64,000 nucleotides of DNA from Paramoeba atlantica. Lineage: Eukaryota; Protista; Discosea. A program made the position numbers and the translations under genes. The stretch covers positions 434,001 to 498,000 of the forward strand of contig CDRNVI010000040.1 in the NCBI GenBank assembly GCA_977017575.1, given 5' to 3'. Below the pieces are notes generated by a model that was not told where the DNA came from, made no database searches, and saw only the letters and a program-made list of their open reading frames with translations. Position 1 is the first letter of the stretch. Every line of letters begins with the position of its first letter. Positions 2,615-56,857 of the stretch are shown here, piece by piece.

Positions 2615-2935
2615 TGAAGGTGAATAAACTCTCAAGTATATCGGTTAATAAAGATATTAAGTGCGTGTTCAAAGCACAGTACAAATTGACATACTATCGC
2701 ATAATAATTAACATTCATGCTTTTGTCACATTTTTTGTTACAAGGTTCTTACTTTTTTTGAGATTTCTTGACTTAGTTATTGATTTAATACCGAGAAAAA
2801 TCACCTTTCGAGTGAAAGCCTGAGATCTGTTGCATTTCTTCTCCCAAATAATGCTTCTTTATTTGAAAAGATTTGCAGTATACAAAAACATAATTGGTCA
2901 AGCCTTTCCCACAAGTTCATATAATTTTTGGTCCC

Positions 2936-4717
2936 ATGTCCCTTTCCCAAAAACTTCTTCGTCGCAAACCTTTGGGTCACGAACACTCTCTCGGGACGGA
3001 ACTTAAACGAGTTCTCACGTTAGTCGACCTTATCTTTGTTGGTATTGGCGCGACTCTGGGTACAGGCGTGTACACGCTCTTAGGAGTTATTGCACACGAG
3101 TCGACGGGACCCTCCATTGTCATTTCTTTTTTTCTTGCGGGACTGGCGAGCATTTTAAGTGCACTATGCTACTCTGAATTTGCCGCGCGCGTGCCACGGG
3201 CCGGGTCTGTGTACGAGTACAGCTTCGTGACCATGGGAGAAGGAATGGCGTGGTTTGCGGGATGGCAGCTCCTTCTGGAATACATCATTGGCACCTCTGC
3301 CGTGGCGAAAGGTCTTGTGAACTACTTGAATGCTCTGGCAAACAATCGGATTCACGAAGCAATGTTAAACAACCTCGGCTGGAATCTCTCCTCCGAACTT
3401 TCACCCTACCCCGACTTTGTCTCCGCCGGTTTTATCTTGCTGTTGACACTGGTTGTGATGTGCGGAGTCAAGGAATCTGCCACGATGAATAACACCTTGA
3501 CGGGGTTAAATTGTTGTGTGATTCTGTTCACCGTCATCTTGGGTTCCTTCTACGCCGACACGACGAACTTCACGGCCAACTTCAGCCCGTACGGAGTACG
3601 AGGCGTTTTTGAAGGTGCGGCCATCTCCTTCTTCTGTTACGTAGGATTCGACGCCATTGCCACCACCGCGGAAGAGGCAAAGAATCCCAAACGAGATCTC
3701 CCCCTCGCCATTGTCAGCTCACTCTGCATCTGCTGCGTAGGCTACATGGCCTCCGGTCTCATTATCTCCATGCTCCAGCCCTACAACCAGATTGACGTCA
3801 ACGCTCCCCTTGCCACCGCCTTCTCCGCCCACAACGTCCACTGGGCGAAGAACGTCATCGCGGTGGGGGCCGTTTGTGGGTGTTTCAGCAGTCTCCTCAT
3901 GGGCGTAGTCCCGATGCCGCGCATCGCGTACGCCATTGCCAGTGACGGGCTCCTCCCCAAGATGTTCAGCAAGGTCCACCCCCGGTTCCGTACCCCCCAC
4001 GTCTCCGCCTGGGCCACCGGCCTCCTCGCCGCCCTACTCGCCATGATCTTCCCCTACGTCTCCCTGGCCAATCTCATGTCGCTCGGCACACTCATGTGCT
4101 ACGCCGCGGTGTGTGCCTCCGTCCTCGTCCTGCGCTACCGAGAGTACGATGAGGAGTGTGCCGCGGGACCGGCGAAGCCCTCGGACCCCTCCAAGGCCCG
4201 CAGCGCGGTCGACCCCCACACCCGCGCCCAGCTCTCGCGGATCGAGGACCCGAACGCGTGGGTGCCGTTCGCGGGGAGCGTGCTGCCCGCGGTGGACCGG
4301 GCCCGTGGGGGGGTCCGGCTCTGGGGCTGGTCCACCTCCTCCTACGCCGCCTCGTGTGTGCTGATTACGCTCTACACGGGGGCCGCGGTGGTGGTGTGTG
4401 TGGTGTATGTGTGCTACGGGGATAGCGCCGGGCGGGCGTTCTACAGTGTCCTCGGGGTGGGACTGGCGGTGATGGTGTACTGTACGGCCCTGTTGGCGCT
4501 GTTGCCGCAGCGGGTTTCGGAGAAAATGAGTTTCTGCGTGCCGTGGTCGCCGTATATTCCGCTGTTGGCCATGTTGTTCAATGTTTTTCTGCTCATCAAT
4601 CTTCCGTGGTCAACATGGGTGCGGTTCTCTGTGTGGTGTGTGATTGGGTTCGTATTATACGTTTTCTATGGAATCAAAAACAGTGTCATTGCGCATCCCG
4701 AGGATTTGACTCCATAG
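2936..4717 (+). CDS. Cationic amino acid transporter (APC/SLC7 CAT family)
   Basis: Motifs LTLVDLIFVGIGATLGTGVY, CYSEFAARVPRAGSVYEY and FCYVGFDAIATTAEEAKNPKR, plus the C-terminal F.VPWSPYIP...TWVRF..W..IG...Y..YG domain. ATG at 2936. Confidence 0.93.
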   Translation: MSLSQKLLRRKPLGHEHSLGTELKRVLTLVDLIFVGIGATLGTGVYTLLGVIAHESTGPSIVISFFLAGLASILSALCYSEFAARVPRAGSVYEYSFVTMGEGMAWFAGWQLLLEYIIGTSAVAKGLVNYLNALANNRIHEAMLNNLGWNLSSELSPYPDFVSAGFILLLTLVVMCGVKESATMNNTLTGLNCCVILFTVILGSFYADTTNFTANFSPYGVRGVFEGAAISFFCYVGFDAIATTAEEAKNPKRDLPLAIVSSLCICCVGYMASGLIISMLQPYNQIDVNAPLATAFSAHNVHWAKNVIAVGAVCGCFSSLLMGVVPMPRIAYAIASDGLLPKMFSKVHPRFRTPHVSAWATGLLAALLAMIFPYVSLANLMSLGTLMCYAAVCASVLVLRYREYDEECAAGPAKPSDPSKARSAVDPHTRAQLSRIEDPNAWVPFAGSVLPAVDRARGGVRLWGWSTSSYAASCVLITLYTGAAVVVCVVYVCYGDSAGRAFYSVLGVGLAVMVYCTALLALLPQRVSEKMSFCVPWSPYIPLLAMLFNVFLLINLPWSTWVRFSVWCVIGFVLYVFYGIKNSVIAHPEDLTP

Positions 4718-18337: not shown

Positions 18338-19256
18338 TTTTCTTTTTTAGGCTCTTCGTTAAACGCGGTGGTTGCTTTCAACTTAGAAGTCACTCATGCT
18401 GCGCGCTTCGCGTTGAAAACTACCGCCGCGTTTAGCGAAGAGCCTAAAAAAGAAAATTTAGCCGGGAAAACGGAAAGATTATAGCCAAAAATAGCCGAAT
18501 TTCGGGTAAAAATGGGGTCATTTTCGCATATTTTTGCTCTCAGAGCACTAAATCCGACATTTGCGCGTGGGAAATCACTCGTAGGTATGAATGGAAGCCT
18601 ACCGAACGTATTGGGTGGAGAATGCGACTCCAACCATACCATTCTTTCGACACAAAAATGCCCCTTTAGGTCCGAAAAATACTTTTTCACCTTTTTTAGT
18701 CAAAAATGGGTCATTTTGGGGGGCGCACCACGGTTAGAAGAAGGGATACCTTGCGAAAGCAACTGCGTAGAAAGCTAGTGTAGGTCCCAAACTATCAAAA
18801 TACAATAGGGGAAACCATTTTGGAAAAATATTTTTTTTGTCATTTTTTTCGCCAAGTTGAATTTTTTTTCAAAAAATTTTTTCCGAAAAAATCCGAACTT
18901 GGCGGACCCGTCCTGCGGATACGCGGGGGGGTCACCCCCGGGTAGGGGGGTGGAAAATGCGCGCCAAGACCCCGGCTACCCTTTCTGCAGTTTTTTTTTC
19001 GAAAACTAATTTTTTCGAAAAAATTTGCTCGACCATGCCCCCCCCCCTGGACCCCCCCCCTGGACCCCCCCCCTGGACCCCCCCCATGGACCCCCCATTT
19101 TTTTCAAATTTTTTTTTCAGTTTTGGACCACCGGAGCCCCCTTTTATATTTTTTTCTTCTATTATATTACTGTGTTCCTCTTTATATTTTCACTGTTTTT
19201 GTTCACTTTTTTTTCAATAATCGAGTGTAGAGCGGTAGTTTTACAACCACCGCAAT
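18338..19256 (+). mobile_element. Family A copy 1: non-coding repeat with hairpins at both ends and no TSD
   Basis: 5-prime hairpin at 18338-18456 (45-nt arms, 29-nt loop). 3-prime hairpin GCGGTAGTT-TTAC-AACCACCGC followed by AAT. The body is homologous to copies at 20127-24111, 27030-27177 and 37926-40118. Confidence 0.8.
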
Positions 19257-23284: not shown

Positions 23285-24687
23285 CTATTTTTTTCTGCGA
23301 CGTAAGATATTTTTTTTCGGTGTAAATATTTTGGTTTTATTGGTTTCTTTTACTTTCAGATATTGCCTCACATATTTTACAGAAATATTAAATTCTCGTG
23401 CAAGTTGCTTCTTTGGGACACCGTGCTCGAACCTCAGGCGCAATAATGTCTTACCTATAGAGGTCATCCCCCCTTTTGGGGGACGGTACTTGGATTTTAC
23501 CATGAAATTTTAGAAAAAGAATATTTCTGAAACTGATTTTTTTAAAAGTTTTAAATGAAGCTAAAAACCCCGGGAACGTGCAGATCTCAAAATTCTAGAC
23601 GATAAAGTGGTGCTGCAACCCCCATGGGTCCCCGCACGCAAAAAATAAAGGGGGGTGCTTTATTCGTGTCGAGGTGTTTATAGGTCCCATACTTTAAAAA
23701 TACAATAGGGGAAACGATTTTGGAAAAATATTTTTTTTGCCATTTTTTTCGCCAAGTTGAAATTTTTTTCAAAAAAAAAATCCGAAAAAATCCGAACTTG
23801 CCGGACCCGTCCTGCGCATACGAGCGGGGGTCACCCCCGGGTAGGGGGGTGGAAAATACGCGCCAAGACCCCGGCTACACCTTCTGCGTTTTTTTTTCGA
23901 AAAAAAATTTTTTCAAAAAAATTTGCTCGACCATGACCCCCGCCATGGACCCCCCCCCTAGACTCTTTCTTTTCAGTTTTGGACCACCGGAGCCCCCTTT
24001 TATATTTTTTTCTTCTATTATATTACTGTGTTCCTCTTTATATTTTCACTGTTTTTGTTCACTTTTTTTCAATAATCGAGGGTAGAGCGGTAATTATACA
24101 ACCACCGCAATTGAGGGAGATACTACTCCCTCGCTACCGTAGGTTAATTCGTCGTGCCCGATTTCATGCCCGATCCTGGTCCGATTTCGTGCCCGATTTG
24201 TGGCCCGATTTCGTTTCAGATGAGTTTTCGAAAAAACTGTTTACAAAGACGTATGAATCGAATTCAGTGACAAGATCACTAGTTTTTCAACAATTCCGAT
24301 GGGTACCCCCTGCCCCCCCCCCCTCCCCACCAGGGTGATGATAGCAATTTTTGAAATTTAAAAAAAAAACAGCAAATTTATGGGTGAAAGTGAAAAAATA
24401 TATTTCTCCCAAATCAACTCCTAGACAATTTTTTGATAGTTTGGGACCTGATATGCCCGTGTACTCTTTGGTTTCATTCGATGCTCCTCCACCCTGTGCC
24501 GGTAATACACCTACAAAGGCCAAAATGTACCTGGAAGCGTGTGACACACAAGACCTTAGAGGAAGGAGGAGGCGCAAGGCAAAAAGGCAGAAGGCGGAGC
24601 CTTCTGTTTTTTTGTCGCGGCGACGACGACTTCCTCGCGTGGGAAGCTGTAAGGGGGTCCTAGGGAGCATATTTCGATGGCTATGTA

Positions 24688-24945: not shown

Positions 24946-26209
24946 GTAGTGTAGGCTGGAGTAGTGCTTACATTCCCACGTACTTAGACTTCATCTACAA
25001 TTAAGCGTAGGACTTTCACTACAATTAAGCGTAGGAAATGTAAGCAGCATTAAAAAAAAGTACCTTCCCAACTTACTTAGCAAACAAAAAACAGGTCGCC
25101 CTCGCAAGCTTACCGAGACATCCTCCAATCGCGTCCGCCGCCTTATCACCAGCGGTACAACTAAGGATGCAGTCGCTACTAGTAAACGGTTAAGAGATGA
25201 GGGGATTGCAGATGTTTCACCTCAAACCATTCGGGTTTCCCTTCGGAAGCGTGGTTTGAAGGGGAAGAAGAAATTTGCAGATGTTTCACCTCAAACCATT
25301 CGGGTTTCCCTTCGGAAGCGTGGTTTGAAGGGGAAGAAGAAATTACGGAAGCCCCATCTCACGAAGCGTCACAAAGCTCTACATCTTGCTTTTGCAAAGA
25401 AGTACGAGCATTGGACGCACGCCGACTGGAGCCGTGTGCTCTTTACCGATGAAAGTAAGATCTGCCGTTTTGAGTCGAACGGCAGCCGGTGGGCGTGGGT
25501 GAGCTTTGGGGAAGCACTTTCAGAGCGAAATACTCACAGCACCGTGAAGTACTGTGGAGGATCCATCATGGTATGGGGGTGTATGATGGCTCACGGTGTG
25601 GGCTCCATTGCTCTGGTTCATGGCAACATGAATGCTGAACAGTATGTTCAAATACTTCAACAGTATTTGCCTCCTTCCCTCTACGAGGTGGATGTCATGA
25701 AGAGCCGTATCATCTTCCAACAAGATAATGATCCAAAGCACACGAGTAAGAAGGCTCGGGAATTCCTTCGTTTGGAAGAATTGTGTGTCCTAGATGGCCC
25801 CCGCAGTCTCCCGATTTAAATCCCATAGAGCACCTATGGGGCGAGCTCAAAAAGTCAACTGCGGATCACCCAGATCCTCCCGTAGGAATGTTGGAACTTT
25901 GGGAACGCGCCCAAAAAGCGTGGGCAGACCTTCCTCCGAGTGCATGTCTTCCTCTTGTCCGCAGCATGCCCCGTCGTTTAAGGGCAGTAATTAGGGCGAA
26001 GGGGGGACTTACGAAGTATTAAGTTTTGGTCATTTTGGTTTGGTAAGGGTGAAGTAAGACAAAGTTTTGGTCAAAAAAAATATTCTCAAAAAAGTGAAAA
26101 AAGTGTTCGAGTGTTGGGCTCGGATTATATCTTTCATAGTTTTTTATAGTAAGATCGTTGATGCAGTCTAAGTATGTGGGAATGTAAGCACTACTCCAGC
26201 CTACACTGC
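24946..26209 (+). mobile_element. Tc1 DD34E transposon, defective
   Basis: 50-bp TIRs match at 47/50 and are flanked by TA. Motifs GRPRK, LFTDESK, VWGCM, QQDNDPKH and (frameshift) PQSPDLNPIE. Contains a 69-bp internal tandem duplication at 25206-25343. Confidence 0.92.
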
Positions 26210-27029
26210 TATAATATACTACTGCATTATCCTCTGCATCTCTTTTATAAAATATAAAAACATTAAAATTTGTGAAAACATTTGAACACTTTTGTTAGTT
26301 ACTGTACAGTACATGTATATCAGGACCCGACGTCAGTTTGTATTTATATACTGTCTACTTCAAGTTTTTCATATCACAATACGCTATACCTTTCTCCCTG
26401 CGAACCGTCATTGTCCTCCAACATCACTCCCTTCTTCTCCCCTCTCTGCGAACAACCATTCCCCACCACCGCCACTCCCTTCTTCCCTCACTGCGAAAAG
26501 TCATTCCCCACCACCATCCCAGTCGTCTCGCCCACGTCGCCTTGATGCTTGGGTTACAATACGCCCTCCTGCCCCACGAGTCGGTGCTCTATCAAACCCC
26601 ATACCTTATAGCGGTTTGACAAAAGAAACTACTACTATACTAGTACGGGAAAGGTAGAAAACCTACTCATACGATAAAGATACCGTTTCGGTAAAGCCAA
26701 CTTTATCCGAACGCTTTGGAGATTCCTAAGATAATGAAAAAAGTTTGGGACTTTTGTTTTATCTAACCAAATACATTGACCCCCCCACTTAGAGGGGTGA
26801 CTCTGGGTGGGAGCGCCTGGGAGCGCCAAGGATATCTTTCGTCAAAATTTTCTTCCTTAGCTTCTTAATATTTTTTGCTTCAATCGGAAGATACAGAAAT
26901 CATGTTACTGGAATTGTTATTCTGCAGGACTTAAACGCGGGTTTCGGCATGTAATACACGTTAATAATACATTGTGCTTAGAGGGGTGACTCTGGGTGGG
27001 AGCGCCTAGGATCCCGCCTAGAATTTTTT

Positions 27030-43935: not shown

Positions 43936-45120
43936 ATGGGTATTGATGGACTCAGCAAAGTAATCGCGGAGAAGGCCATTCACGGGTTGAAAAAGCAGGA
44001 CATCAAAAGTTACTTTGGTCGTCGCATTGCTCTGGATGCCTCCTGCGCGATCTACCAGTTCCTTATCGCACTAAAAGGCTTCTCCGAGGGTCAGGGTACG
44101 GAACTCACCAATGAGGCCGGGGAGGTGACCTCCCACCTTGTGGGGCTCTGGAGCCGCACACTTCGAATGGTCAGCGAGGGGATTAAACCGATTTACGTGT
44201 TTGATGGCAAGCCTCCCGACATGAAGTCGCATGAGATCTCCCGGAGGAACAAACTCGCGGCGGATGCGGCCACCGGGTTGCAAGTCGCGACTGAGTTAAA
44301 AGATGACGCCATGATGGAGCGCATGAGCAAACGCATGGTGCGCGTCACCCGGGAGCAGAACGAGGAGTGTAAGAAACTGCTACGGCTGATGGGGATGCCT
44401 GTGGTGGAGGCGCCGGAGGAGGCGGAGGCCCAGTGCGTAGAGCTTGTCCGCGGGGGCAAGGCGTGGGCCGTGGGGACGGAGGACATGGATGCCCTGACGT
44501 TTGGCGCCACGGTTATGCTGCGTCACCTGAACTATTCCCAGTCCGGTGGGATTATGGAGTACCATCTGGAGGAGGTGCTGCGTGATCTGAAGTTGACCCG
44601 GGAGCAGTTTATTGACTTTTGTGTGCTGCTTGGGTGTGATTACACTGGGAAGGTTGCGGGGATAGGTCCCGTGCGAGCGCTGGAGGGAATACTTCAATAT
44701 GGGAGTATGGAAAAGCTATTGGAGAACTTAGATCCGGAGAAACATCCATGGACGCCGGAAAACTTTAATTATGTCGCCGCTCGAAGGCTTTTTCAAAACC
44801 CAGTTGTGAATAAGGCAGAGGATTTGCTCATAGATTTTACTGAGCCCGACGTCGAAGGACTAAAAGAATTCCTTGTCAAGGAAAAATTATTTTCTGAAGA
44901 ACGCGTATCGCGCGGTATCCAAAAATTAATGGATGCGCGGAAGACGAAGACTCAAGGTCGGTTGGATACTTTTTTTAAGACTGCCCACAAGATTTCATCA
45001 ACCCCCTTCGGAGGGGAGGATGAGAAAAAAAACAAGCGAACTACGAAGGCGTCACTTCCCTCAGGAAAGCTTGTTAAGAAAGGACATGCGGGAGGAAAGA
45101 AAGGAGTTGCAAAAAACTAA
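43936..45120 (+). CDS. FEN1: Flap endonuclease 1
   Basis: MGI.GLSK.I, FGR.IALDAS..IYQFLIA, EAEAQC, TEDMDALTFG, GCDY and the PIP box TQGRLDTFF. Confidence 0.98.
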   Translation: MGIDGLSKVIAEKAIHGLKKQDIKSYFGRRIALDASCAIYQFLIALKGFSEGQGTELTNEAGEVTSHLVGLWSRTLRMVSEGIKPIYVFDGKPPDMKSHEISRRNKLAADAATGLQVATELKDDAMMERMSKRMVRVTREQNEECKKLLRLMGMPVVEAPEEAEAQCVELVRGGKAWAVGTEDMDALTFGATVMLRHLNYSQSGGIMEYHLEEVLRDLKLTREQFIDFCVLLGCDYTGKVAGIGPVRALEGILQYGSMEKLLENLDPEKHPWTPENFNYVAARRLFQNPVVNKAEDLLIDFTEPDVEGLKEFLVKEKLFSEERVSRGIQKLMDARKTKTQGRLDTFFKTAHKISSTPFGGEDEKKNKRTTKASLPSGKLVKKGHAGGKKGVAKN

Positions 45121-45462
45121 GGAGCGAGGTTTTAATGGTTTCCCTTGATCAGAACTCTTTTAGGGTATCGTGCAGTTTCAATAGCTATTATACCAAGTTG
45201 TAGCACTGAACATTCGCACGTTTTTTCTACAGTGTAGTAGAGTGTCGTGAAAGGACGGTGTCAGGCTCGTGGATTCTAAGTGTAGTATAGTAGAGTTTAG
45301 TTCTCAAAGGTGGCTTTGAAAAGGGAATTCATGATTCTGTCTTTGGAATAGGTTTTTTTCACATCATAGCAAAAGTCCCCTTTCACGTCATACAAGTATG
45401 TCGCAAATACGCATAAGAAAAAATTTTAGTAATACGGTCAAAACTAAGAATGTTTATTTAGT

Positions 45463-45960
45463 ATGCAGTCGCCAGAGTTAGTAAAGGAAGCTTCATTTTC
45501 GAAGAAAGTAGGAACCTTAAAAGAACTACCAAGCACTCCTCATAGTACGAACCGTCCGTTAATGCGGCAAGGTCTTGCGGATATTACGAATCTGTCTCCA
45601 CACATTTCCGGAGTGCACTCGATCAAAGACCCAATGCTGCTCAAAGGCTGTAGCCCACAAGAAAGTCAGTATCAGACTTCAGCTTCGGTTCCTAGTCGCA
45701 CTAAGAATAATATTTCACTATTCCCTGATCCCTCTGCCCTTGCCAATAGTACAGAAATACTAAATACCGGTAAGGAATTTCCGCCCGTTGAAACACAGGA
45801 TACTTCAAGGCCCGCACAATGGGACGTAGCTGATCTTAGAATCTTGATAGATGAGAGGGCTCTCAAAAGGTCAACCGGAATGGAACTCGAAGAAAACTAC
45901 GATTGTGTTCCTGATTTACCTGACCCACTTGAATACATTTCTGCTTATCCAGTTCTATAG
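45463..45960 (+). CDS. Hypothetical disordered protein with a destruction box
   Basis: 165-aa Ser/Pro/Thr-rich ORF containing RQGLADITN (RxxLxDIxN) and an acidic C-terminus. Confidence 0.7.
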   Translation: MQSPELVKEASFSKKVGTLKELPSTPHSTNRPLMRQGLADITNLSPHISGVHSIKDPMLLKGCSPQESQYQTSASVPSRTKNNISLFPDPSALANSTEILNTGKEFPPVETQDTSRPAQWDVADLRILIDERALKRSTGMELEENYDCVPDLPDPLEYISAYPVL

Positions 45961-46337
45961 AGTTCAAGCATGTAGTCCTGTAGATAGGTCCTGTTCTTGC
46001 CCTTAGGAAAATAGCACAATTATCTAGTTTTCTGGATAATGAACTTCGAGGAAAACAAATCTTTCATTCGCTCTAACTCCGATGAATGGCGCAGAACTTT
46101 AGCTAGTGCTTAAAATTCGGATATTTTTTCCTTTTCACAAAGTTTGACACCAAATTTGTAGATAACTTCTAAAGGGAACACACTTGACAACAGTTGTTCT
46201 GTCATACATGCCGTATACTTTTATGCTTTTATTACTCAAAACTTGTAACCCGCATCCCGAATTATACTTCGAAAGTCATTTTCACTACTAGTAAACCCTT
46301 TTTATCTTTCCCGGGTATCCATTTTTCTTTTTGTTTC

Positions 46338-47738
46338 ATGAGCAGCCGTACCTTGTACATTCTTTACGAGAGTGCTACCGGGTACGCGGTGTTTCAGCAA
46401 TTGCGCGCTGAGGAAATTGGCATCACGGATATCGCTCTTCAGCAATCCTATCAGGACCTCTCCACCTTTCGTACTGTTGTAAAACTCGTGAGCTTTGCAC
46501 CGTTCCGTACCGCCGAGGAGGCTCTGGAGAATTGCAACTGTGTCGCGGAGGGGCTGATGACGGATTACCTGCAGCAATTTCTCTCCCAGCTTTTCGCACG
46601 GAAGTTAAAGAAAGGGTCGGCGTTTGAACTCGGGGTAAGCGCCACCACCCTGGGGGCTGTGATCCATGATACACTTCAAATTCCGGTGGTTTCTACAGAG
46701 CACGTGCTGGAGCTCTCACGTTGTATTCGCCTACACGCGGGTAAATTGCTACCTTCTCATCAGCCGGGGGATATTGAGCGCGCACAGTGTGGTCTTACCC
46801 ACGCGTACAGCCGCAACAAAGTGAAGTTCAACGTTCATCGGGTGGACAACATGGTGATTCAGGCTATTGCGCTGATTGATCACATGGATAAGGGAATTAA
46901 CCAGCTTGCGATGCGCGTCAAGGAGTGGTACGGGTGGCATTTCCCAGAGCTCGCACGTGCTCTTCCGGATATTCTTCCTTACGCTAAAGTTGCTCTTACC
47001 CTTGGTGATCTTGATCAAATCCCCGATGTGGGGAAGGATCAGGAACTGGATGAAAAGCTGCGTGAAATTTTGCAGTTCTACGGTTTGGATGAAGGACTTG
47101 CGCAGACGATTTTGGAGCGCGCCCGGACCTCCATGGGAACACAAGTGTCGGAGTTGGACATGTTGAATATTATGGCCTATGCACGTAAGGTTGCGGATCT
47201 AGCTGAGTACCGCACTCGACTGACTGGGTACCTCACGCAAAAGCTAAAAGTAATTGCGCCGAACTTGACGACTCTGCTGGATGAACGTATTGCAGCGCGG
47301 CTGATTAGTCGCACTGGGTCACTTACGAGCCTTGCCAAAGCTCCAGCATCGACGATTCAAATTCTTGGGGCCGAAAAGGCACTGTTCCGGGCGCTCAAAA
47401 AGAAGGGCAAAACACCGAAGTATGGATTGATTTTCAACTCGAGCTTTATTTCGCGCGCGTCGAAACCGAACAAGGGGCGCATCTCTCGGTTTCTTGCAAA
47501 TAAGTGTGCAATCGCGGCCCGCTTAGATTGCTTCATGGAAAAACCTACCTCTATCTTTGGAGGCGTCTTACGGAATCAATTGGAGGGTCGCTTGGGATTC
47601 CTTGAAGACAAAAGTACGAGTCCGATATCAAACCGTGAGGCAATGAAGGAAGCTATCGAACGATATAAAAAATTGGTGGAAAAGCGGGTACGAAAGGCGA
47701 AAGAAAAAGCAGCTCTAAAAGAGCAAATGGCATCTTAA
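46338..47738 (+). CDS. NOP56: Box C/D snoRNP protein NOP56
   Basis: H.YSR.KVKFNV.RVDNM.IQ, EWYGWHFPEL, PAST.QILGAEKALFRALK and GRISRFLANKC. ATG at 46338. Confidence 0.95.
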   Translation: MSSRTLYILYESATGYAVFQQLRAEEIGITDIALQQSYQDLSTFRTVVKLVSFAPFRTAEEALENCNCVAEGLMTDYLQQFLSQLFARKLKKGSAFELGVSATTLGAVIHDTLQIPVVSTEHVLELSRCIRLHAGKLLPSHQPGDIERAQCGLTHAYSRNKVKFNVHRVDNMVIQAIALIDHMDKGINQLAMRVKEWYGWHFPELARALPDILPYAKVALTLGDLDQIPDVGKDQELDEKLREILQFYGLDEGLAQTILERARTSMGTQVSELDMLNIMAYARKVADLAEYRTRLTGYLTQKLKVIAPNLTTLLDERIAARLISRTGSLTSLAKAPASTIQILGAEKALFRALKKKGKTPKYGLIFNSSFISRASKPNKGRISRFLANKCAIAARLDCFMEKPTSIFGGVLRNQLEGRLGFLEDKSTSPISNREAMKEAIERYKKLVEKRVRKAKEKAALKEQMAS

Positions 47739-48150
47739 TATCTGAACGTTTTTAGAAATATACCTTAATTCAATGACAAACATGGCATTTCGCTCTTTAA
47801 TTTTATTTCTTAAAAGCTAAGCTTGAAAACAGGAATCTGTAACATGAAAAATGCATTCCAATATGAACTTAAAATTGTCGCACTGGACTCTATGGTTAAA
47901 CCTGCAGTTGTGCATAGTGGACATTCAGTAAGCTCTATCTGTTTTCTCTTTTCTTATGATTATTGATGTATCAAAAAAGAGTTGTACTCAACACACAGCA
48001 CCAATAACAAGCCTCCTACATTGTAACAGTTTACCATCCCCCACTAACCACGCTAACTTCCACAGAAAACTTTCTTTTTTTCTTTTTTGTCTCAGCCTTT
48101 TTACTTTCTAACTTCCCCACCACCCCCTTCACCTCCATGAACCCTCCTAC

Positions 48151-49332
48151 ATGAACCCACCTCACCTCTCTACTCTCCTCTTCGCACTCACTCTCCTCCT
48201 CCCGGTGGCACAACCTTACCACCCTCTTTACCCTCTAGAGGGCTACTCCTCCCCCGCGGATCCCTCCGAGACCCATCCCCCTTCTCATCCTGAGGAAGAC
48301 CAGCCGCCCCCCTCCCTCCCTCCCCCCACAGGCATCCACGAGGAGGACTACTTCGGTTCCGACGGGTACAAGTACGTCACCCCGAGCCCACGCGCCCAGG
48401 AAACCCGGAAAGCGCGAAAAGCAGCAGCTGCTGCTGCGCAAAAAGAAAAACAAAAAGATAAGGAAGAAGCCAACAAAGATAAGAAAGAATCCAACAAAGA
48501 TAAGAAAGAAGCCAACCAAGATAAGAAAGAAGCCAACAAAGATAAGAAAGAAGCCAACCAAGATAAGAAAGAAGCCAACCAAGATAAGAAAGAAGCCAAC
48601 CAAGATAAGAAAGAAGCCAACCAAGATAAGAAAGAAGCCAACCAAGATAAGGAGGCAGAAGAAAACCATAAAACAACAACAACAACAGCAACAACAACCC
48701 CATTTTCGAACCCAAAAGAAAGCCACTACGCGGTCGACACCAACGTGTTGCATTACCCGTTCCCCGATGGGGCGGCTCTCCCGGTGGTGGCGCCCGGGGC
48801 CGCGGGGGATGAGGACATGGAGGAGATGGATCTGTTCTCGGATCTCACCCTGGAGAGCGCGGCGCCGTACTTCCCCCCACTCCCGCGGGCGAGAGGGGGG
48901 AGGAACCGGGAGGCGGGGAGGGTGCGGGCGAAGACGATTTATGAGTACCTGGAGGATATTATCCACGAGCGGCTGCGGAGGTGTAGTCGACGGTGTAAGT
49001 GCTGGGGGTATGACATATGGCTCGGGTCGCTTCCGGGGGAGGCCAGGGGGTGGGTGACGGGGAAGAGCTACCGACGGATTCTGCAGGAGACGCATCTGCA
49101 GATGAGGGACCGACTGGATATGTGTGGGTGTTCCATGTATGTGGTGTGTCGTCACCTGCCGGAGAGTGTGCTCGCCAGGCATGTGAAGGATGAGGAGTAT
49201 ATTGTGTATGAGGATGTGTACCGTGAGCTGCAGTGGGTGGATCGTATGATACGCAAGAGCGTGGGCCTGTGCTGTTATGCGAAACAGGGTAACGTGAACG
49301 GGTATGAGAAGAAAATATACGCGGTATTGTAG
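48151..49332 (+). CDS. Hypothetical secreted or surface protein with DKKEAN(Q/K) repeats and a Cys-containing C-terminal domain
   Basis: Signal-peptide-like LSTLLFALTLLLPVAQP, then a Pro-rich linker, 9 heptad repeats and a Thr run. Confidence 0.7.
   Translation: MNPPHLSTLLFALTLLLPVAQPYHPLYPLEGYSSPADPSETHPPSHPEEDQPPPSLPPPTGIHEEDYFGSDGYKYVTPSPRAQETRKARKAAAAAAQKEKQKDKEEANKDKKESNKDKKEANQDKKEANKDKKEANQDKKEANQDKKEANQDKKEANQDKKEANQDKEAEENHKTTTTTATTTPFSNPKESHYAVDTNVLHYPFPDGAALPVVAPGAAGDEDMEEMDLFSDLTLESAAPYFPPLPRARGGRNREAGRVRAKTIYEYLEDIIHERLRRCSRRCKCWGYDIWLGSLPGEARGWVTGKSYRRILQETHLQMRDRLDMCGCSMYVVCRHLPESVLARHVKDEEYIVYEDVYRELQWVDRMIRKSVGLCCYAKQGNVNGYEKKIYAVL
48457..48651 (+). repeat. Coding tandem repeat, 9 x 21 bp GATAAGAAAGAAGCCAAC(C/A)AA
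   Basis: Read directly. Confidence 0.95.
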
Positions 49333-49531
49333 ACAGGTTACATTGGTTATGTTCCATTGTAGGAAACTGTTGTGGTTTTCGCGTATTTCGGGTTCTTTTT
49401 AACCCAAGCGAACCACTTTTTTGTGAAATTGTTTTATCATGCACTTATAGTGCAGAGATTTACTCACCATGTCCTTATCCCGCATACGACGGGTGGATCA
49501 TTTGAGGTTTCGTCCTCGCCGGAGGTGTGCG

Positions 49532-49693
49532 GGTGCGGAGAGCTGGCGTCCCAGGTGCAGAGAGCTCGGTTGTCATGTGCAGGTGCAGAGAGTCGGATGC
49601 GTAATCCCCAAAATTTCGGGGGCAATCCGGGTGCAGAGAGCTGCGACAGAGCCGAGGTGCGGAGAGCTGGGCGACCGCCAGGTGCAGAGAACC
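49532..49693. repeat. Six spaced copies of GGTGC(A/G)GAGA(GCT)
   Basis: Copies start at 49532, 49554, 49582, 49630, 49656 and 49681, with unique spacers of 9-36 nt. Confidence 0.9.
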
Positions 49694-49884
49694 GAGTCTC
49701 GTCGGCGGAGGACACGTCTAGTGGTCCTCAAGGGAGGCCACCGTGACGCATGGCCCTCTCGGAGAGGAAAAAGACAAGTCGAAAAAAGCCGAGAGGGGGG
49801 AGCACACTCACTCCAGGGGAGTGAGTCGGGGAGGGGTGAAGGGGTGAAAGCGCGTCCCCTGCTTCAGCGACAAGAGGGACAGTT

Positions 49885-50015
49885 CCGACCTTAGTGCCGG
49901 CCGGCAACGGGCATAAAAATACAGTAACAGTATGCCCGTTGCCGGGGAAAGAAAGGATTAACTAAGGAAAAAGTACCAACAAGGTACAGAAACTGTATCT
50001 TTAAATATGTATTGT
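49885..50015 (-). ncRNA. Spliced leader (mini-exon) RNA gene or SL-derived copy
   Basis: The - strand reads ACAATACATATTTAAAGATACAGTTTCTGTACCTTGTTG|GTAC. This has the kinetoplastid core CAGTTTCTGTAC, a 19-nt core-to-splice-site block ending TTG as in trypanosome SLs, and a GT donor. The exon is about 49977-50015; the 3-prime end of the RNA is uncertain. Confidence 0.8.
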
Positions 50016-50134
50016 ACTTTAAATATAAAAAACATGCATAGTAATTTGACACGTATTTTTTCACACAGCTACTCTTTTGTATTTGTTTCATATGCTATAA
50101 AACAATAGACACAGAACCTCACGACCACCAAACA

Positions 50135-52863
<2,729 letters not shown>

Positions 52864-53065
52864 TCAGATTAGTTGTTCTATCTTTTGTAATTTATCGTCA
52901 AGAATATCATTCTGAATCTCTAAGAATATCATTCCGTTCTTTGCTTGGTTTCTTCTGCCCGAAGTTTTTTTGTTGTATAAGTACTGTATATTCGTCCGTA
53001 TTTACTACTACTCTCCAGGGGACTCAATTTTTTCTCAATACCTAACAAATATTTCCTCTAGAAAA

Positions 53066-53311
53066 ATGGATTCAAACAAGACAGAAGAAGTGGAGAACTC
53101 TTCTAGACATAGAGTGCAAGATGAGGTCGATTGCGATCTCTCCCAATTTGATGAAGGGTATCTTTACAAACGTGCCCTAGTTCGGACAGGATCTGATCCT
53201 AAGAAAAAATTTACCATCGATGAAAGACAGATTATTGAAGCTCTTCGCGATCCTTGGGAAGAACTTGAGAGGTTACAAATCGTTCAAGTAAATGCCAGTA
53301 ATCATTCATGA
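53066..53311 (+). CDS. Small hypothetical acidic protein, 81 aa
   Basis: ATG ORF co-oriented with the cluster; no family recognised. Confidence 0.45.
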   Translation: MDSNKTEEVENSSRHRVQDEVDCDLSQFDEGYLYKRALVRTGSDPKKKFTIDERQIIEALRDPWEELERLQIVQVNASNHS

Positions 53312-53659
53312 AGTACAATTGTTCAATCGTGAGGTATTTGCTTTCAGATGCTCGTATTAGGAATGCTAAAAACGATATTCGCAAATGTTTTTCGGCATAT
53401 AAACTTAAGGTGGGCACTTCTTTCATCAAAATTCAAGTAATTTTTCCCTCAGAAATTCAACATTTTTTATCTTTGCTTTGCCTCTTTGCTTGAGATCCAC
53501 CCAAATCATCCTTCAGTATTCCCCTTTTTGGATGATTTTTTCATCAAAATAGCAAGCCTAACGCGCACACAGTCCCTAAAGAGCCAAAAACGAGCACAAG
53601 AGCAAAGACCGCGCCGCGAAGCGGCGCGAAAACATTTTTGGTCCTTTTCTGCTAATTTT

Positions 53660-53727
53660 TTAATATTCCTATACCTCTTAATATTCCTATACCTCTTAAT
53701 ATTCCTATACCCTCCTAATATTCCTAC
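53660..53727. repeat. Tandem repeat, about 3.7 x 18 bp TTAATATTCCTATACCTC
   Basis: Read directly. Confidence 0.9.
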
Positions 53728-54438
53728 CAGGAATATTAACCCGGACAGTGGTTTACTTTAAAGTAGTACTTTTCTTCACGGCCCGCGGAAACTTTTTAAA
53801 AGCTGAAAAACTTTTTTCAGGTCATTGAAAAGGTCGGAGTCCAACGGAGTTTGAATGCTGTAATAACTTTCGGGCCACTCAATGAGCGTGTGCATGCTCT
53901 GACGCGAACTCCTCGACTACACGGCGGATGTTTCCCAAAAATTCATCACTACCGTCGACTCCCCACCAGTAATAAACCCCCGGGTACAAGGATTGAGCCC
54001 TTTTTGGGCTGACCCCCATTAAGGAGGATTTGAACCCAAGTAACAGAGGTTTGGCTCGGAAGGCTATCTGGCTGGGGAGGCAGGCGTCGGGGGTGTCTGA
54101 GTGAGGAGATAATGGATGGGCGAGGCGGGGGTGTCTTGGTGAGCGGAGAATGGATGGACCAAAAGACACTAAAATATAGTATGATACAGTATAATATCGA
54201 CTTGATAATGATGATATCCTCCACGTTCGTAACGTTCTCCATGAAGAATTGGGGTGAATGAACAAACCACACGGTGTACCCAATTTCGTTTTCGTCAACA
54301 ATCATCAACCCCTTTCTTTCCTGATCCCGCATCCGACACCATGTGAGCATCAAAGACGCGCTCAGAGTGCAGTTCACCCAATGTTTCTTCAAGCAGAAAT
54401 TTGAATGCGGTGGCATCAGTAGGTACACTCCCTTTTTA

Positions 54439-54667
54439 TTTCTTTCCTACACCTCACTCGGTCTATAGTCAACTAATCGACTACTAAACCTTGATACAGC
54501 TTTTTTTGCTTGTAATCTATTAGATCAGCTTCTAATGATGAGAAACCATGAATCTTTTTTGATAGTTTACATGACAATCAGAACAGGTAACCCCGTGACT
54601 GAAACTTCAATTTTTGAGTGTAAAAAATATTTGTGCTTCGTATCAGGAACTGTTTCTTTACAACTAA
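54439..54667. repeat. Dispersed repeat of about 230 bp, copy 2
   Basis: Homologous to 40321-40551. Confidence 0.9.
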
Positions 54668-54810
54668 TACCTTGGAAAAACCAAAAATTGCACCTGTCTT
54701 GATTTTTTGTTAACCTGGTTCCTTTTTTTGATTAGGCTTTGTTAGGCTTTTTTGCCGAATTATTTATACTAATTTTTTAAACAAATTATATACAAGGAGT
54801 TTCTGGAGAC

Positions 54811-56577
54811 ATGCAAGAAGTACGTGAAACATCCTTGTGGCATGAGAAGTCTTTTCGCATTACGTCTTTGACGCTAGTTATCACAGGTTTGCCGACGGAA
54901 TACCTCCGAAGTGTTCATTGTTTGCGACAGGCCTTTGAAGTGTTTGGTGGAGTAGAGTCCGCTAAAGTTCTTTCGCACGGCGAGGGTCGCTTTCCGAAGC
55001 CTGTTGCATACTTAACGATGAGAGATCAAAAAGAATTTAATGCAGTGCTGGCCATGGGTGTGGTTCCTTTATTTGGTCAGCTATGTCGCGTGACTGAATT
55101 TTCTAGTTCACTCTATGCCACTAGTCAGGGGAGTAGCTACGGAGAGTATACCGCAGAAAAGCATTACGCTTTAACCGCTAAGCAGTACTCCGTCGATGGC
55201 GAAAACATTGTAAAAGAGGCTGTGGAAAGCGCTGAACTACGTGATTCAATGAAAAATGAAACGCAAACTCGAGAGAGTGAGAGAGAACACATACATGACC
55301 CCTCCTTGGCGAAAACGCATCATTCGAAGCAAGTTGAGCATCCGTCCGACACGCCTCAATTTCCCCGATGGGAAGACGACAAATTATCCCCCCTAGTACA
55401 TCGTAAAGTCGTTGTGCTACGCAATTCATCGTCCTCTAAGCAACCTGCACATAAGGTACTGTCACGAACCCCACTAGCTGCGATAAGCCGTATTTTTCGA
55501 AACCTCTGGAACACCAGTGCTTCGGTCCCGGGTCCCGTCTCCAAGAGCCCTCCCTCGGGGAAGCGATTTACGGTGGCTACATGGAACACATTGTACCCTA
55601 AATTTACCTCCGCGTGTCGTCAATATTGCCCGGATCAGTACCTGCGCTGGCGAGAGCACCGTGCCCCTCGCGTGCTCGCTGCCATACGCGAACTCCGGCC
55701 CGCGATCCTGGCGCTCCAGGAGGTGGGCGAACGCAAATCTTCGGACTACCGCTCCTTTTACGCCCAGCTCGAACGCGAGGGCTACGCCCTGTGTGTCGTC
55801 CCTAAAGTCATCTCCGAATCCACCGCCTCTGTCGGAGGCCGTGACAGCATCTGTCTCGCCTACCTTGTTGACCAATTCCTCCCCGTCGAGGCCTTCGGCA
55901 CCAAGGGATTCCAAATCATCATGCTCCCCCCCACCAACTCCCACGTCGGGTGTATTGCCGCCCTCCAACACCGTACCACCCAACGTTACGTCATCGCCGC
56001 CACCTCCCACCTTAAAGCGGACAAACTCGAAGAAGACACCCGCAAAGTCCAACTCCAAGCCTTACTCCATAAAGTCGCGGAGGCCAACCGCAAGGTCCTC
56101 TCCCTTCACCAAGACGACTTTGGCGGTCGCTTGTCTTCCCGCTCCACCCCCCGGGCCCCCCCACCCCCCTCCCCCCTCCCCCCGTGCGACGCGGTCATCC
56201 TCGGGGACTTTAACTCCGAGCCGCGCTGGGGTCTGCTGCGGGCCGCGACCTCCGCCGCGCTGTGCGCGCCGCTCGGGGGGCTACGGGAGGTCTACAGCGA
56301 CCACGCCCCCGTGGCGTTCTTCGACAAGCAGTACACCTGCCTGATGCCCCACACCCAGGACCAGGTGGACTACGTGTTCCACACGACGGGGCTGGAGGCG
56401 ACCCGGCTGCTGCGGGTCCCGAGTAACCGCGACGTGGTGGCGGTGTCCCGGCGTGACTTTATGGGCCACGCCCGGGCGGGGGAGGAGAGGACGGAGCACC
56501 TCCCGACCCCGTCCTACCCCTCGGACCATATTCTGCTGTGGGCGGAGTTTGGGTTCGGGGGGGAGGGGGGGAGGTGA
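54811..56577 (+). CDS. RRM plus EEP-family phosphoesterase (CCR4/nocturnin/Angel group)
   Basis: N-terminal RRM-like LVITGLP...LRQAFEVFGGV. EEP motifs TVATWNTL, LALQEV, SHLKA, ILGDFNS, VDYVF and YPSDH. Confidence 0.88.
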   Translation: MQEVRETSLWHEKSFRITSLTLVITGLPTEYLRSVHCLRQAFEVFGGVESAKVLSHGEGRFPKPVAYLTMRDQKEFNAVLAMGVVPLFGQLCRVTEFSSSLYATSQGSSYGEYTAEKHYALTAKQYSVDGENIVKEAVESAELRDSMKNETQTRESEREHIHDPSLAKTHHSKQVEHPSDTPQFPRWEDDKLSPLVHRKVVVLRNSSSSKQPAHKVLSRTPLAAISRIFRNLWNTSASVPGPVSKSPPSGKRFTVATWNTLYPKFTSACRQYCPDQYLRWREHRAPRVLAAIRELRPAILALQEVGERKSSDYRSFYAQLEREGYALCVVPKVISESTASVGGRDSICLAYLVDQFLPVEAFGTKGFQIIMLPPTNSHVGCIAALQHRTTQRYVIAATSHLKADKLEEDTRKVQLQALLHKVAEANRKVLSLHQDDFGGRLSSRSTPRAPPPPSPLPPCDAVILGDFNSEPRWGLLRAATSAALCAPLGGLREVYSDHAPVAFFDKQYTCLMPHTQDQVDYVFHTTGLEATRLLRVPSNRDVVAVSRRDFMGHARAGEERTEHLPTPSYPSDHILLWAEFGFGGEGGR

Positions 56578-56857
56578 GAGAAGGGGGGAAGGGGTGAAAA
56601 AAGGGGATAAAAAGAGAACACAGAGGTGGAGAAGAAGAGATGGAGATGTTTTCAATGTCTTGAAGGCATGAGCAAGAGCACACGTTCTTGATAGCATGAG
56701 CGAAAGAAGGTTGGATGAGTGCATTCGTTTTCAAAGAAATATTACGTGCCTTTCTAGTTTAGTTCATTTTTAGCATTAAAAGCTGCTTTTATAGCGAAGT
56801 GAACAGCACACTACTTAATTTTTACCATGTTTCGAATGATGAGTTGTTGAACAGGAA

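Follow-up and report, generated by a model that had tools for sequence, protein, structure and literature searches.

The window analysed here, a stretch of 64,000 nucleotides of a kinetoplastid genome (contig CDRNVI010000040.1 of the Paramoeba atlantica assembly GCA_977017575.1), carries four strong compositional islands, with centres at ~4231, 48771, 51625 and 56220, and a marginal fifth in FEN1 (~44300), which are the footprints of a point-centred, two-directional process acting on DNA and not of protein composition. Each strand is C-rich running 5'→3' into the centre of an island and G-rich running out of it, and the order was the same in every island of the window, in agreement with the polarity proposed in an earlier note on this DNA. 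The reading preferred here, to which a probability of roughly 40% was assigned, is that the islands represent footprints of long-lived, point-centred sites of breakage and homologous repair (candidate recombination hotspots) that are blind to gene borders.

The patches of about 1 kb that the earlier note had described, with switch points near 48780, 51620 and 56230, were recovered in the GC and skew profiles and in the fourfold counts, and the C-rich and G-rich strings that it quoted were found at their positions. The patches present GC contents of 0.60–0.70 against a background of ~0.42, and the GC skew passes from values of −0.2 to −0.56 to values of +0.2 to +0.4 at ~48.6–48.8, 51.6 and 56.2 kb. 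Step fits on third positions gave centres at 4231, 44352, 48771, 51720 and 56220, the fit for island 3 (51720) differing from that obtained with all-site skew (51625). Silent-site GC reached 0.9–1.0 in the strong islands, compared with 0.39 in the background, and when the five islands were pooled, central GC3 was 0.89 (background 0.39), with a C3 of 0.52 on the left and a G3 of 0.61 on the right. At fourfold-degenerate sites, the frequency of C was 0.50–0.61 left of the centre and that of G was 0.51–0.66 right of it, and the outward strand held purines and pyrimidines at 0.72 and 0.28, respectively. On the sense strand, the right arms are rich in G (and T); the left arms mirror them and are equally strong. 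The S-bias at fourfold sites rose from −0.48 in the background to +2.6 at the island centre, where GC3 also peaks exactly, and S-bias and G/C skew share the same spatial extent, both being gone by ±600–800 bp; the islands are ~1.3 kb wide and the force acts within ~±0.6–0.75 kb of a fixed point. The CpG-dense core claimed for the switch was confirmed (20–26 CpG per 200 bp, the maximum density, against a median of 9), and the CpG observed/expected ratio was ~1 across the entire window, islands and background alike. All the islands lie within one plus-strand gene array, several of them mid-gene, and they cluster at 44–56 kb, the adjoining 31-kb stretch having none. The same islands were present in other, independently assembled strains. 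No published description of this pattern was found.

The first strong island (3350–4650), outside the range covered by the earlier note, lies in an amino-acid permease gene, with a C arm at ~3350–4230 and a G arm at ~4230–4650 around the centre at ~4231 (fourfold C 19/22 at 3974 and G 13/15 at 4469). The weak island in FEN1 (44000–44750), placed near 44330 by the earlier note and centred here at ~44300–44350, has a faint C arm and a clear G arm (44340–44700), with GC3 up to 0.90 and G3 of 21/30. The C arm of island 2 (47990–48420; GC skew −0.47 to −0.56) runs from the intergenic polypyrimidine DNA 5' of gene 48151 through the first 90 codons of this gene and holds three minus-strand G4 motifs (48251–48406), while its G arm (48720–49330, centre ~48771) holds plus-strand G4 motifs at 48887–48928 and 49035–49062. 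Between the two arms, a 21-bp tandem repeat of 9.4 copies (48454–48651, plus strand) encodes a Lys/Glu/Asn-rich repeat. The G-rich stretch at 49.4–50.0 kb was considered as part of island 2 and rejected, being a 581-bp insertion of a high-copy element (49426–50008; word depth 1000–14800× against ~50× in the flanks) that inflates the right flank; in another strain (run X1), one contig passes directly from 49426 to 50008 without it. The C arm of island 3 (51290–51625) comprises the intergenic C/T tract 5' of RUVBL2 and codons 1–48 of this gene, with C at 24 of the first 30 third positions and a minus-strand G4 motif at 51477–51508, and the G arm (51625–52250) lies in the conserved RUVBL2 ATPase domain (G3 up to 22/30). 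Island 4 has its C arm (55480–56220; fourfold C up to 17/24) in a gene of the endonuclease/exonuclease/phosphatase (EEP) family, where a proline-rich C-run (56138–56183) doubles as a minus-strand G4 motif; its G arm (56220–56640) carries a plus-strand G4 motif at 56551–56571 and continues past the stop codon (56577) into 3' flanking DNA, the EEP protein having a Gly-rich C-terminal tail.

The C-to-G step was evaluated by shuffling synonymous codons within each protein (500 shuffles per gene) and was never reached in the genes of islands 1, 2, 3 and 4 (0/500 each; z = 6.9, 5.1, 5.9 and 7.1, respectively). The FEN1 island was marginal (z 1.9, 20/500), NOP56 and the open reading frame at 36.8 kb were non-significant, and eight control genes were flat. 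Skew was far weaker at codon positions 1 and 2 than at position 3 and was greatest at fourfold sites, the opposite of the disappearance at such sites that the earlier note had named as evidence against its own proposal. The skew also continues beyond genes, as had been claimed, with values of −0.87 in the 156 nt 5' of RUVBL2 and +0.40 in the 242 nt 3' of the EEP stop. Being greatest at fourfold sites and present in intergenic DNA, the bias is not an effect of protein or codon adaptation.

The kilobase-scale rise of GC at neutral sites, fourfold and intergenic, is the profile expected from GC-biased gene conversion (gBGC). Classical gBGC is strand-symmetric, whereas here fourfold sites have a G:C ratio of ~3:1 in right arms and of 1:3 in left arms, and an extra strand-specific component is required. 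The islands resemble the gBGC peaks at hotspots of dogs and birds, the 'runaway GC' of the gerbil and the 5' GC3 gradients of grasses in their kilobase GC3 peaks at neutral sites, in the GC-codon amino-acid shifts in conserved genes, in lineage specificity and in clustering, but differ from them in the mirror C-to-G skew of ~3:1 G:C per arm; to our knowledge, the described peaks are strand-symmetric, and they are likewise so in the gerbil literature examined. The additional component may, as a tentative proposal, be an unequal repair of complementary mismatches, with G/G and G/T being repaired but C/C left unrepaired, in a heteroduplex of fixed polarity, by which the strand geometry of break repair would have been written into the genome, although this inferred mechanism is not known to have shaped any genome. 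After a break, the 5' ends would be resected and, on each side, the 3'-ended (inward) strand of the broken chromatid would pair with the complementary (outward) strand of the donor. The well-recognised mismatches, G/T best and also G/G, would be corrected to the donor and C/C would largely escape repair, so that alleles having C on the inward strand would resist conversion and those having G there would be converted. Over time, C would accumulate on the inward strand and G on the outward strand (where T would also prevail over A and C), while ordinary GC-biased conversion would strip A/T from both strands and island width would correspond to the length of the resection or conversion tract. The shared extent of S-bias and skew is expected if a single heteroduplex-repair process makes both. 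In fungi, animals and prokaryotes alike, C/C is repaired 3–5 times less efficiently and G/T is repaired best (PMC3218862), and gBGC at stable hotspots, with the gerbil as an example, is comparable in size and amplitude to the GC3 of 0.9–1.0 over ~1.3 kb found here (PMC7403616).

Third-position differences from strain X1 numbered 2–3 of 617 inside the islands and 13 of 643 outside (Fisher p = 0.007–0.02), a silent divergence 4–6 times lower in the islands, in one strain pair with 15–16 differences in assembler contigs. According to our own calculations, a pure mutation-bias model giving the observed GC3 would lead to ~2.4 times more diversity, and a fixation bias of 4Nb ~3.4 to 0.3–0.7 times the diversity. 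Since silent divergence is lower and not higher in the islands, the data lean to fixation bias over hypermutation, and thus to recombination with biased gene conversion as the force on the islands. Counting against recombination, GC3 is highest at the very centre, where gap repair should be unbiased, and the mutational asymmetry of human meiotic hotspots predicts the opposite polarity (PMC7615360). Those human double-strand-break hotspots share with the islands a mirror strand asymmetry within 1–2 kb and prominent C>G and A>G changes, but C and A are depleted there on the 3' single-stranded (inward) strand, and they present a mutation excess in contrast with the reduced silent divergence of the islands (PMC7615360).

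Sites of bidirectional Pol II initiation or of R-loop formation within the polycistron, a kinetoplastid analogue of GC-skewed bidirectional CpG-island promoters, would explain the outward G-richness somewhat less convincingly and are the strongest rival, though less likely than recombination. The displaced, single-stranded outward non-template strand would gain G (and T), or G/T would be selected for directing initiation, and the open chromatin may also draw recombination, adding GC enrichment. Where PRDM9 is lacking, hotspots are located in the nucleosome gaps of promoters, and hotspot and start site may therefore coincide. The islands share with the R-loop class of vertebrate CpG-island promoters a size of ~1 kb, a GC of 0.6–0.7, the CpG-dense core with observed/expected near 1, the central negative-to-positive skew switch, the G-rich outward strands and the G4 potential. 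Of the 11 G4 motifs of the window, 8 fall in three islands, invariably on the outward strand. The islands differ from the vertebrate promoters in that the background is not CpG-depleted (observed/expected ~1), as the methylated vertebrate background is, so that they are not escaped-methylation islands, and in that they lie in the coding sequence of a polycistronic array with GC3 of 0.9–1.0. The polarity is also that of the dispersed Pol II promoters of Trypanosoma brucei, a member of the same phylum, which are direction-dependent and have a coding strand rich in G/T when read along transcription (PMC5579346). In divergent start regions of T. brucei, mirrored promoters give C/A-rich and then G/T-rich DNA, as in the islands; the background coding strand of the window has a weak keto skew of the same sign (+0.16), and a trans-splicing genome tolerates a start inside upstream coding sequence. 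Nevertheless, the T. brucei promoters lie at polycistron boundaries in H2A.Z regions of ~10 kb, are no GC islands and do not overwrite codons, whereas here no island sits at a polycistron boundary or strand switch, and 4–5 sites would fall within 12 kb of one co-directional array, several of them mid-gene. The equal strength of left and right arms would need equally strong antisense transcription, a purely mutational origin predicts raised silent diversity where it is lowered, and selection on ~400 silent sites per island would be a heavy load. A shallow, unstranded RNA run (X5) gave four contigs, none covering an island core.

Another strand-asymmetric process of lesion bypass, acting where non-B DNA or a fragile site recurs, is improbable; an example would be abasic-site bypass in which C is inserted opposite lesions of a strand that is repeatedly exposed. 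This process would be self-reinforcing through the G-rich structure and tied to no start site, origin or meiosis. For the outward strand to have its purine excess at fourfold sites, pyrimidines must have changed to G, as in C>G transversions, which are known to mark bypass on single-stranded DNA (PMC7615360), and in RUVBL2 the right arm carries Q>E (C>G) and the left arm A>P (G>C). However, hypermutation predicts a silent diversity higher than that observed, no common motif or structure was found to define the island centres, and bypass alone does not remove T from the exposed strand.

Fixed bidirectional replication origins, one of the options raised by the earlier note, are improbable as well. 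The outward strand would serve as template for the lagging strand, having the same sequence as the leading strand, and would be exposed single-stranded and turn G(+T)-rich, by analogy with the skew jumps at bacterial origins and human N-domains. The minus-to-plus jump has the sign of known origins, replication is inherently bidirectional and gene-blind, and the islands cluster like initiation zones, but replication skew should span the replicon and here decays within 0.7 kb, with the background regained by ±600–800 bp, while GC3 near 1.0 and lowered diversity are left unexplained. The islands are intragenic and GC-rich, with minus-strand G4 motifs upstream and plus-strand motifs downstream, an arrangement opposite to that of T. 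brucei origins mapped by SNS-seq (PMC13179062). The proposal of point-centred landmarks, independent of gene borders and written in coding sequence, stands, with its origin option weakened by the short skew and the G4 polarity. Ordinary causes (chance, a Pro-rich and then Gly-rich protein, expression-linked codon usage, polypyrimidine splice tracts or assembly artefact) are highly improbable and were rejected on the position-specific skew, the strain assemblies and the shuffle tests, with the flip falling within single genes, even though the left arms of islands 2 and 3 are partly polypyrimidine, as expected before kinetoplastid splice sites, and the EEP gene has its Pro-run and Gly tail.

The points at which transcription, replication and recombination start on kinetoplastid chromosomes have long been debated, since neither promoters nor origin motifs can be recognised in these genomes, and the islands are a strong composition signal that marks discrete points readable from sequence alone, at whose coordinates each of the readings makes a definite prediction. 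Should the mismatch-repair proposal be true, they would map, at base-pair resolution and from sequence alone, the stable sites at which recombination initiates in a kinetoplastid and the polarity of the heteroduplex, and biased gene conversion of a strand-specific kind would for the first time be seen to shape both the composition of a genome and its proteins. Recombination at these sites would mean that conversion bias can saturate silent sites and prevail over purifying selection in core proteins, RUVBL2 among them, and would be indirect evidence, for this lineage, of sex, which is not known to be documented in this organism. Start sites would instead imply initiation at single-gene scale inside polycistrons. 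Under either reading, the islands need masking in codon-usage, dN/dS and phylogenetic analyses of this genome.

The comparison with orthologues suggested by the earlier note was made for RUVBL2, and the C-to-G flip was absent from the orthologues of four other kinetoplastids; judged from this comparison, the islands are lineage-specific. At sites conserved in at least 90% of 38 orthologues, RUVBL2 presents W→S and arm-specific changes (I>V, K>R, T>A, M>V and Q>E on the right arm, and A>P and D>P on the left), a pattern that is typical of non-adaptive drive; the force is thus strong enough to displace conserved residues. Codons 201–240 hold 17 GARP residues, where the consensus has 10, and 2 FYMINK residues, where it has 11.

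The GC islands changing from C-rich to G-rich that the earlier note had described were confirmed by sliding profiles, fourfold-site profiles and synonymous shuffles, and every sequence string cited for them was present at its given position. In the sliding profiles, the patches displayed a GC content of 0.60–0.70, and the GC skew passed from about −0.2 to −0.56 on the left to +0.2 to +0.4 on the right. The strongest C-to-G flips in a step scan were at 51625, 56350, 48500 and 4250, and third-position fits placed the centres at 4231 (amino-acid permease gene), 44352 (the weak island in FEN1), 48771 (the gene at 48151), 51720 (RUVBL2) and 56220 (a gene of the endonuclease/exonuclease/phosphatase family, EEP). 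The island near 4.2 kb lies beyond the range of the earlier note; it spans 3350–4650, with its centre at ~4231 within the permease gene, and its strength equals that of the other islands (z 6.9). Negative (G-to-C) steps in the scan were merely entries into C arms and exits from G arms, and no GC-rich patch of reverse polarity was found in the window.

Third positions in 30-codon windows reached GC3 values of 0.9–1.0, with maxima of 25/30 for C on the left and 22/30 for G on the right, and the skew at positions 1 and 2 was far weaker. When the five islands were pooled, third positions were C 0.52 and G 0.15 on the left and G 0.61 and C 0.24 on the right, with a GC3 of 0.89 at the centre vs 0.39 in the remaining genes of the window. 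The bias persisted at fourfold-degenerate sites alone (C 0.50–0.61 left, G 0.51–0.66 right), where both the preference for G/C over A/T and the skew were gone by ±600–800 bp. Synonymous codons were permuted within each protein and the resulting steps compared with the observed one; 0/500 shuffles reached it in each of the four strong islands (z 5.1–7.1). FEN1 was marginal (z 1.9), no significant step was found in NOP56 or the 36.8 kb ORF, and 8/8 control genes were flat by the same shuffle. The claimed spill of the skew beyond genes was also observed (non-coding skew −0.87 before RUVBL2 and +0.40 past the EEP stop codon), as was the CpG-dense core, with CpG density highest there (20–26 per 200 bp vs a median of 9). 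The CpG observed/expected ratio was ~1 throughout the window, so that the islands are not of the escaped-methylation kind.

Read 5' to 3', each strand was C-rich toward the centre (inward strand) and G-rich away from it (outward strand), and a pattern that is its own reverse complement indicates a two-directional process. At fourfold sites the outward strand followed the order G >> C ~ T > A, with purines at 0.72 vs pyrimidines at 0.28, so that transitions alone are insufficient and a direct preference for G over C is required. The flip was chiefly of G vs C, with a weak A/T component, which excluded a pure keto-skew (transition-only) model and requires either transversions or a repair bias between G/G and C/C. 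Eight of the 11 G4 motifs in the window fell within three islands, all on the outward strand (minus strand on the left, plus strand on the right). Counting both strands, the 8-mer CCGGGCCC occurred only three times in the 64 kb, at 4298, 51625 and 56150, each copy at most ~70 bp from a strong-island centre; it is not claimed as a common centre motif, since by our estimate chance yields 1–10 GC-only 8-mers common to three of the five islands and the cores are GC-rich. No significant sequence motif common to the centres was found.

The window has a GC content of 44% and carries plus-strand ORFs in a dense array, in which the permease gene (2894–4717), FEN1 (43936–45120), NOP56/58 (46194–47738), RUVBL2 (51481–52863) and the EEP gene (54811–56577) were assigned with Pfam. 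In the databases, RUVBL2 matched kinetoplastid proteins best, from Prokinetoplastina transcriptomes, Trypanosoma and a JGI metagenome, none of them above 73% identity, so that the organism is a kinetoplastid whose close relatives are absent from the sequence collections. Genes for ncRNA or tRNA were ruled out as island landmarks, with no Rfam family at gathering thresholds and no tRNA by ARAGORN across the window. Fourfold sites of all the window's genes outside the islands were T 0.34, A 0.28, G 0.20 and C 0.18; the coding-strand G+T excess there was weak and of the sign expected for transcription-associated asymmetry. The prospect that orthologues carry the island at the same codons did not hold, as C3 and G3 were flat in the RUVBL2 genes of four further kinetoplastids (L001, L003, L004 and L006). 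No comparable island was found over ~29 kb of flanks from two of these four, and conservation of the island was thus ruled out among these genes and flanks. Full-text search returned no published account of such islands in kinetoplastids, and none of the papers searched connects bodonid or prokinetoplastid genomes with GC skew. The nearest known systems are GC-skewed CpG-island promoters and hotspots of GC-biased gene conversion (gBGC), and the islands unite traits of both within the coding sequence of a polycistronic genome, with silent sites saturated.

The window's RUVBL2 was set against 38 orthologues at the positions where at least 90% of them agree. At such positions the right arm carried I>V, K>R, T>A, M>V/A, F>W and Q>E, and the left arm A>P and D>P. 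At codons 201–240, consensus identity was only 0.47, with 17 GARP residues vs 10 in the consensus and 2 FYMINK residues vs 11. Judged from this alignment, the island-forming force overrides protein conservation. The EEP protein has a proline-rich run immediately to the left of the centre (56138–56183), and its C-terminal tail, encoded on the right arm (56551–56577), is glycine-rich; these low-complexity segments appear to be made by compositional drive.

The region was present in four public sequencing runs of the same organism, and contigs of the other strains carried the same islands, with ~1% difference from the window in the flanks; exact-protein look-up yielded no further other-strain DNA. 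The only RNA-like run (X5) gave shallow, unstranded contigs. For the run X1, the list of differences was complete for 4/5 contigs, with one of the two differences of contig 3 unlisted. Third-position differences numbered 2 (at most 3)/617 in islands vs 13/643 outside them (Fisher p = 0.007–0.02; one strain pair), and all-site differences 6/2176 vs 26/2724 (binomial p = 0.002; one strain pair). By our calculation, a mutation bias giving a GC3 of 0.95 would produce ~2.4 times the background flux, and a fixation bias of 4Nb ~3.4 would produce 0.3–0.7 times background; the observed island/background ratio was ~0.16–0.3. This lowered divergence, from few differences in assembler contigs of one strain pair, is the sole evidence that separates fixation-bias from hypermutation models.

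Break or recombination hotspots were ranked first among the readings of the islands, tentatively and with a probability of about 0.4. gBGC accounts for the GC3 saturation, width, amino-acid drive, clustering and lowered divergence. The mutation asymmetry of human meiotic hotspots has a polarity opposite to that of the islands (PMC7615360), so that damage to single-stranded DNA at resected breaks was rejected as their cause; an asymmetry based on conversion would, unlike the human one, yield the observed polarity. On either side of a break, the outward strand of the donor would be paired with the 3'-ended inward strand of the broken chromatid. At a G:C/C:G heterozygous site, a broken chromatid with inward G would give G/G, to be repaired to the donor, and one with inward C would give C/C, to be left mostly unrepaired. 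In fungi, animals and prokaryotes, C/C mismatches are repaired 3–5 times less efficiently, and repair is best for G/T (PMC3218862). With G/G repaired to the donor and C/C escaping, we infer, as an unpublished proposal of our own, that mismatch repair would favour the inward-C/outward-G allele; the difference of G/T over A/C would likewise favour G over A, and T over C, on the outward strand.

Divergent transcription or R-loops at the centres would give the same polarity as the direction-dependent promoters of T. brucei, G/T-rich on the coding strand (PMC5579346), and as vertebrate bidirectional CpG islands. Nevertheless, the sites are dense and in mid-gene, strong antisense transcription would be needed, and a mutational origin is at odds with the lowered diversity, so that this reading is considered possible but rather unlikely; it may coincide with recombination hotspots if one open-chromatin site serves both. 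Generic lesion-bypass sites at the centres were judged improbable. Replication origins were considered more doubtful still; the sign of the skew jump is right, but replicon-long skew would be expected and that of the islands is gone within 0.7 kb. Of the earlier note's interpretation, a two-directional, point-centred process is supported, and among the landmarks it listed (origins, divergent or R-loop starts, hotspots) the origin reading is weakened. Ordinary explanations are very improbable, with protein composition, codon adaptation and chance ruled out by the fourfold-site profiles and synonymous shuffles.

Long C-runs, G-runs and sharp skew steps were also observed at 18900–19100, 24300–24330 and 26200–26830 at an ordinary GC content (0.40–0.44); these are structurally unlike the GC islands and are not to be counted among them. 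The G-rich stretch at 49.4–50.0 kb was excluded from the island in the gene at 48151, as it is a mobile insertion: 49426–50008 is a 581-bp insertion of an element with a very high copy number (assembler depth 1000–14800x vs ~50x in the flanks), and it holds a perfect hairpin at ~49892–49945 as well as 26-bp repeats of the GGTGCAGAGAGCT type. One X1 contig joins 49426 to 50008 without the 581 bp, which indicates that the insertion is polymorphic. In the island of the gene at 48151, a 21-bp tandem repeat at 48454–48651 (9.4 copies, 96% matches), encoding a Lys/Glu/Ala/Asn-rich repeat, is where the contigs of other strains break; it sits exactly where the C arm gives way to the G arm, and the repeat may therefore have expanded at the island centre.
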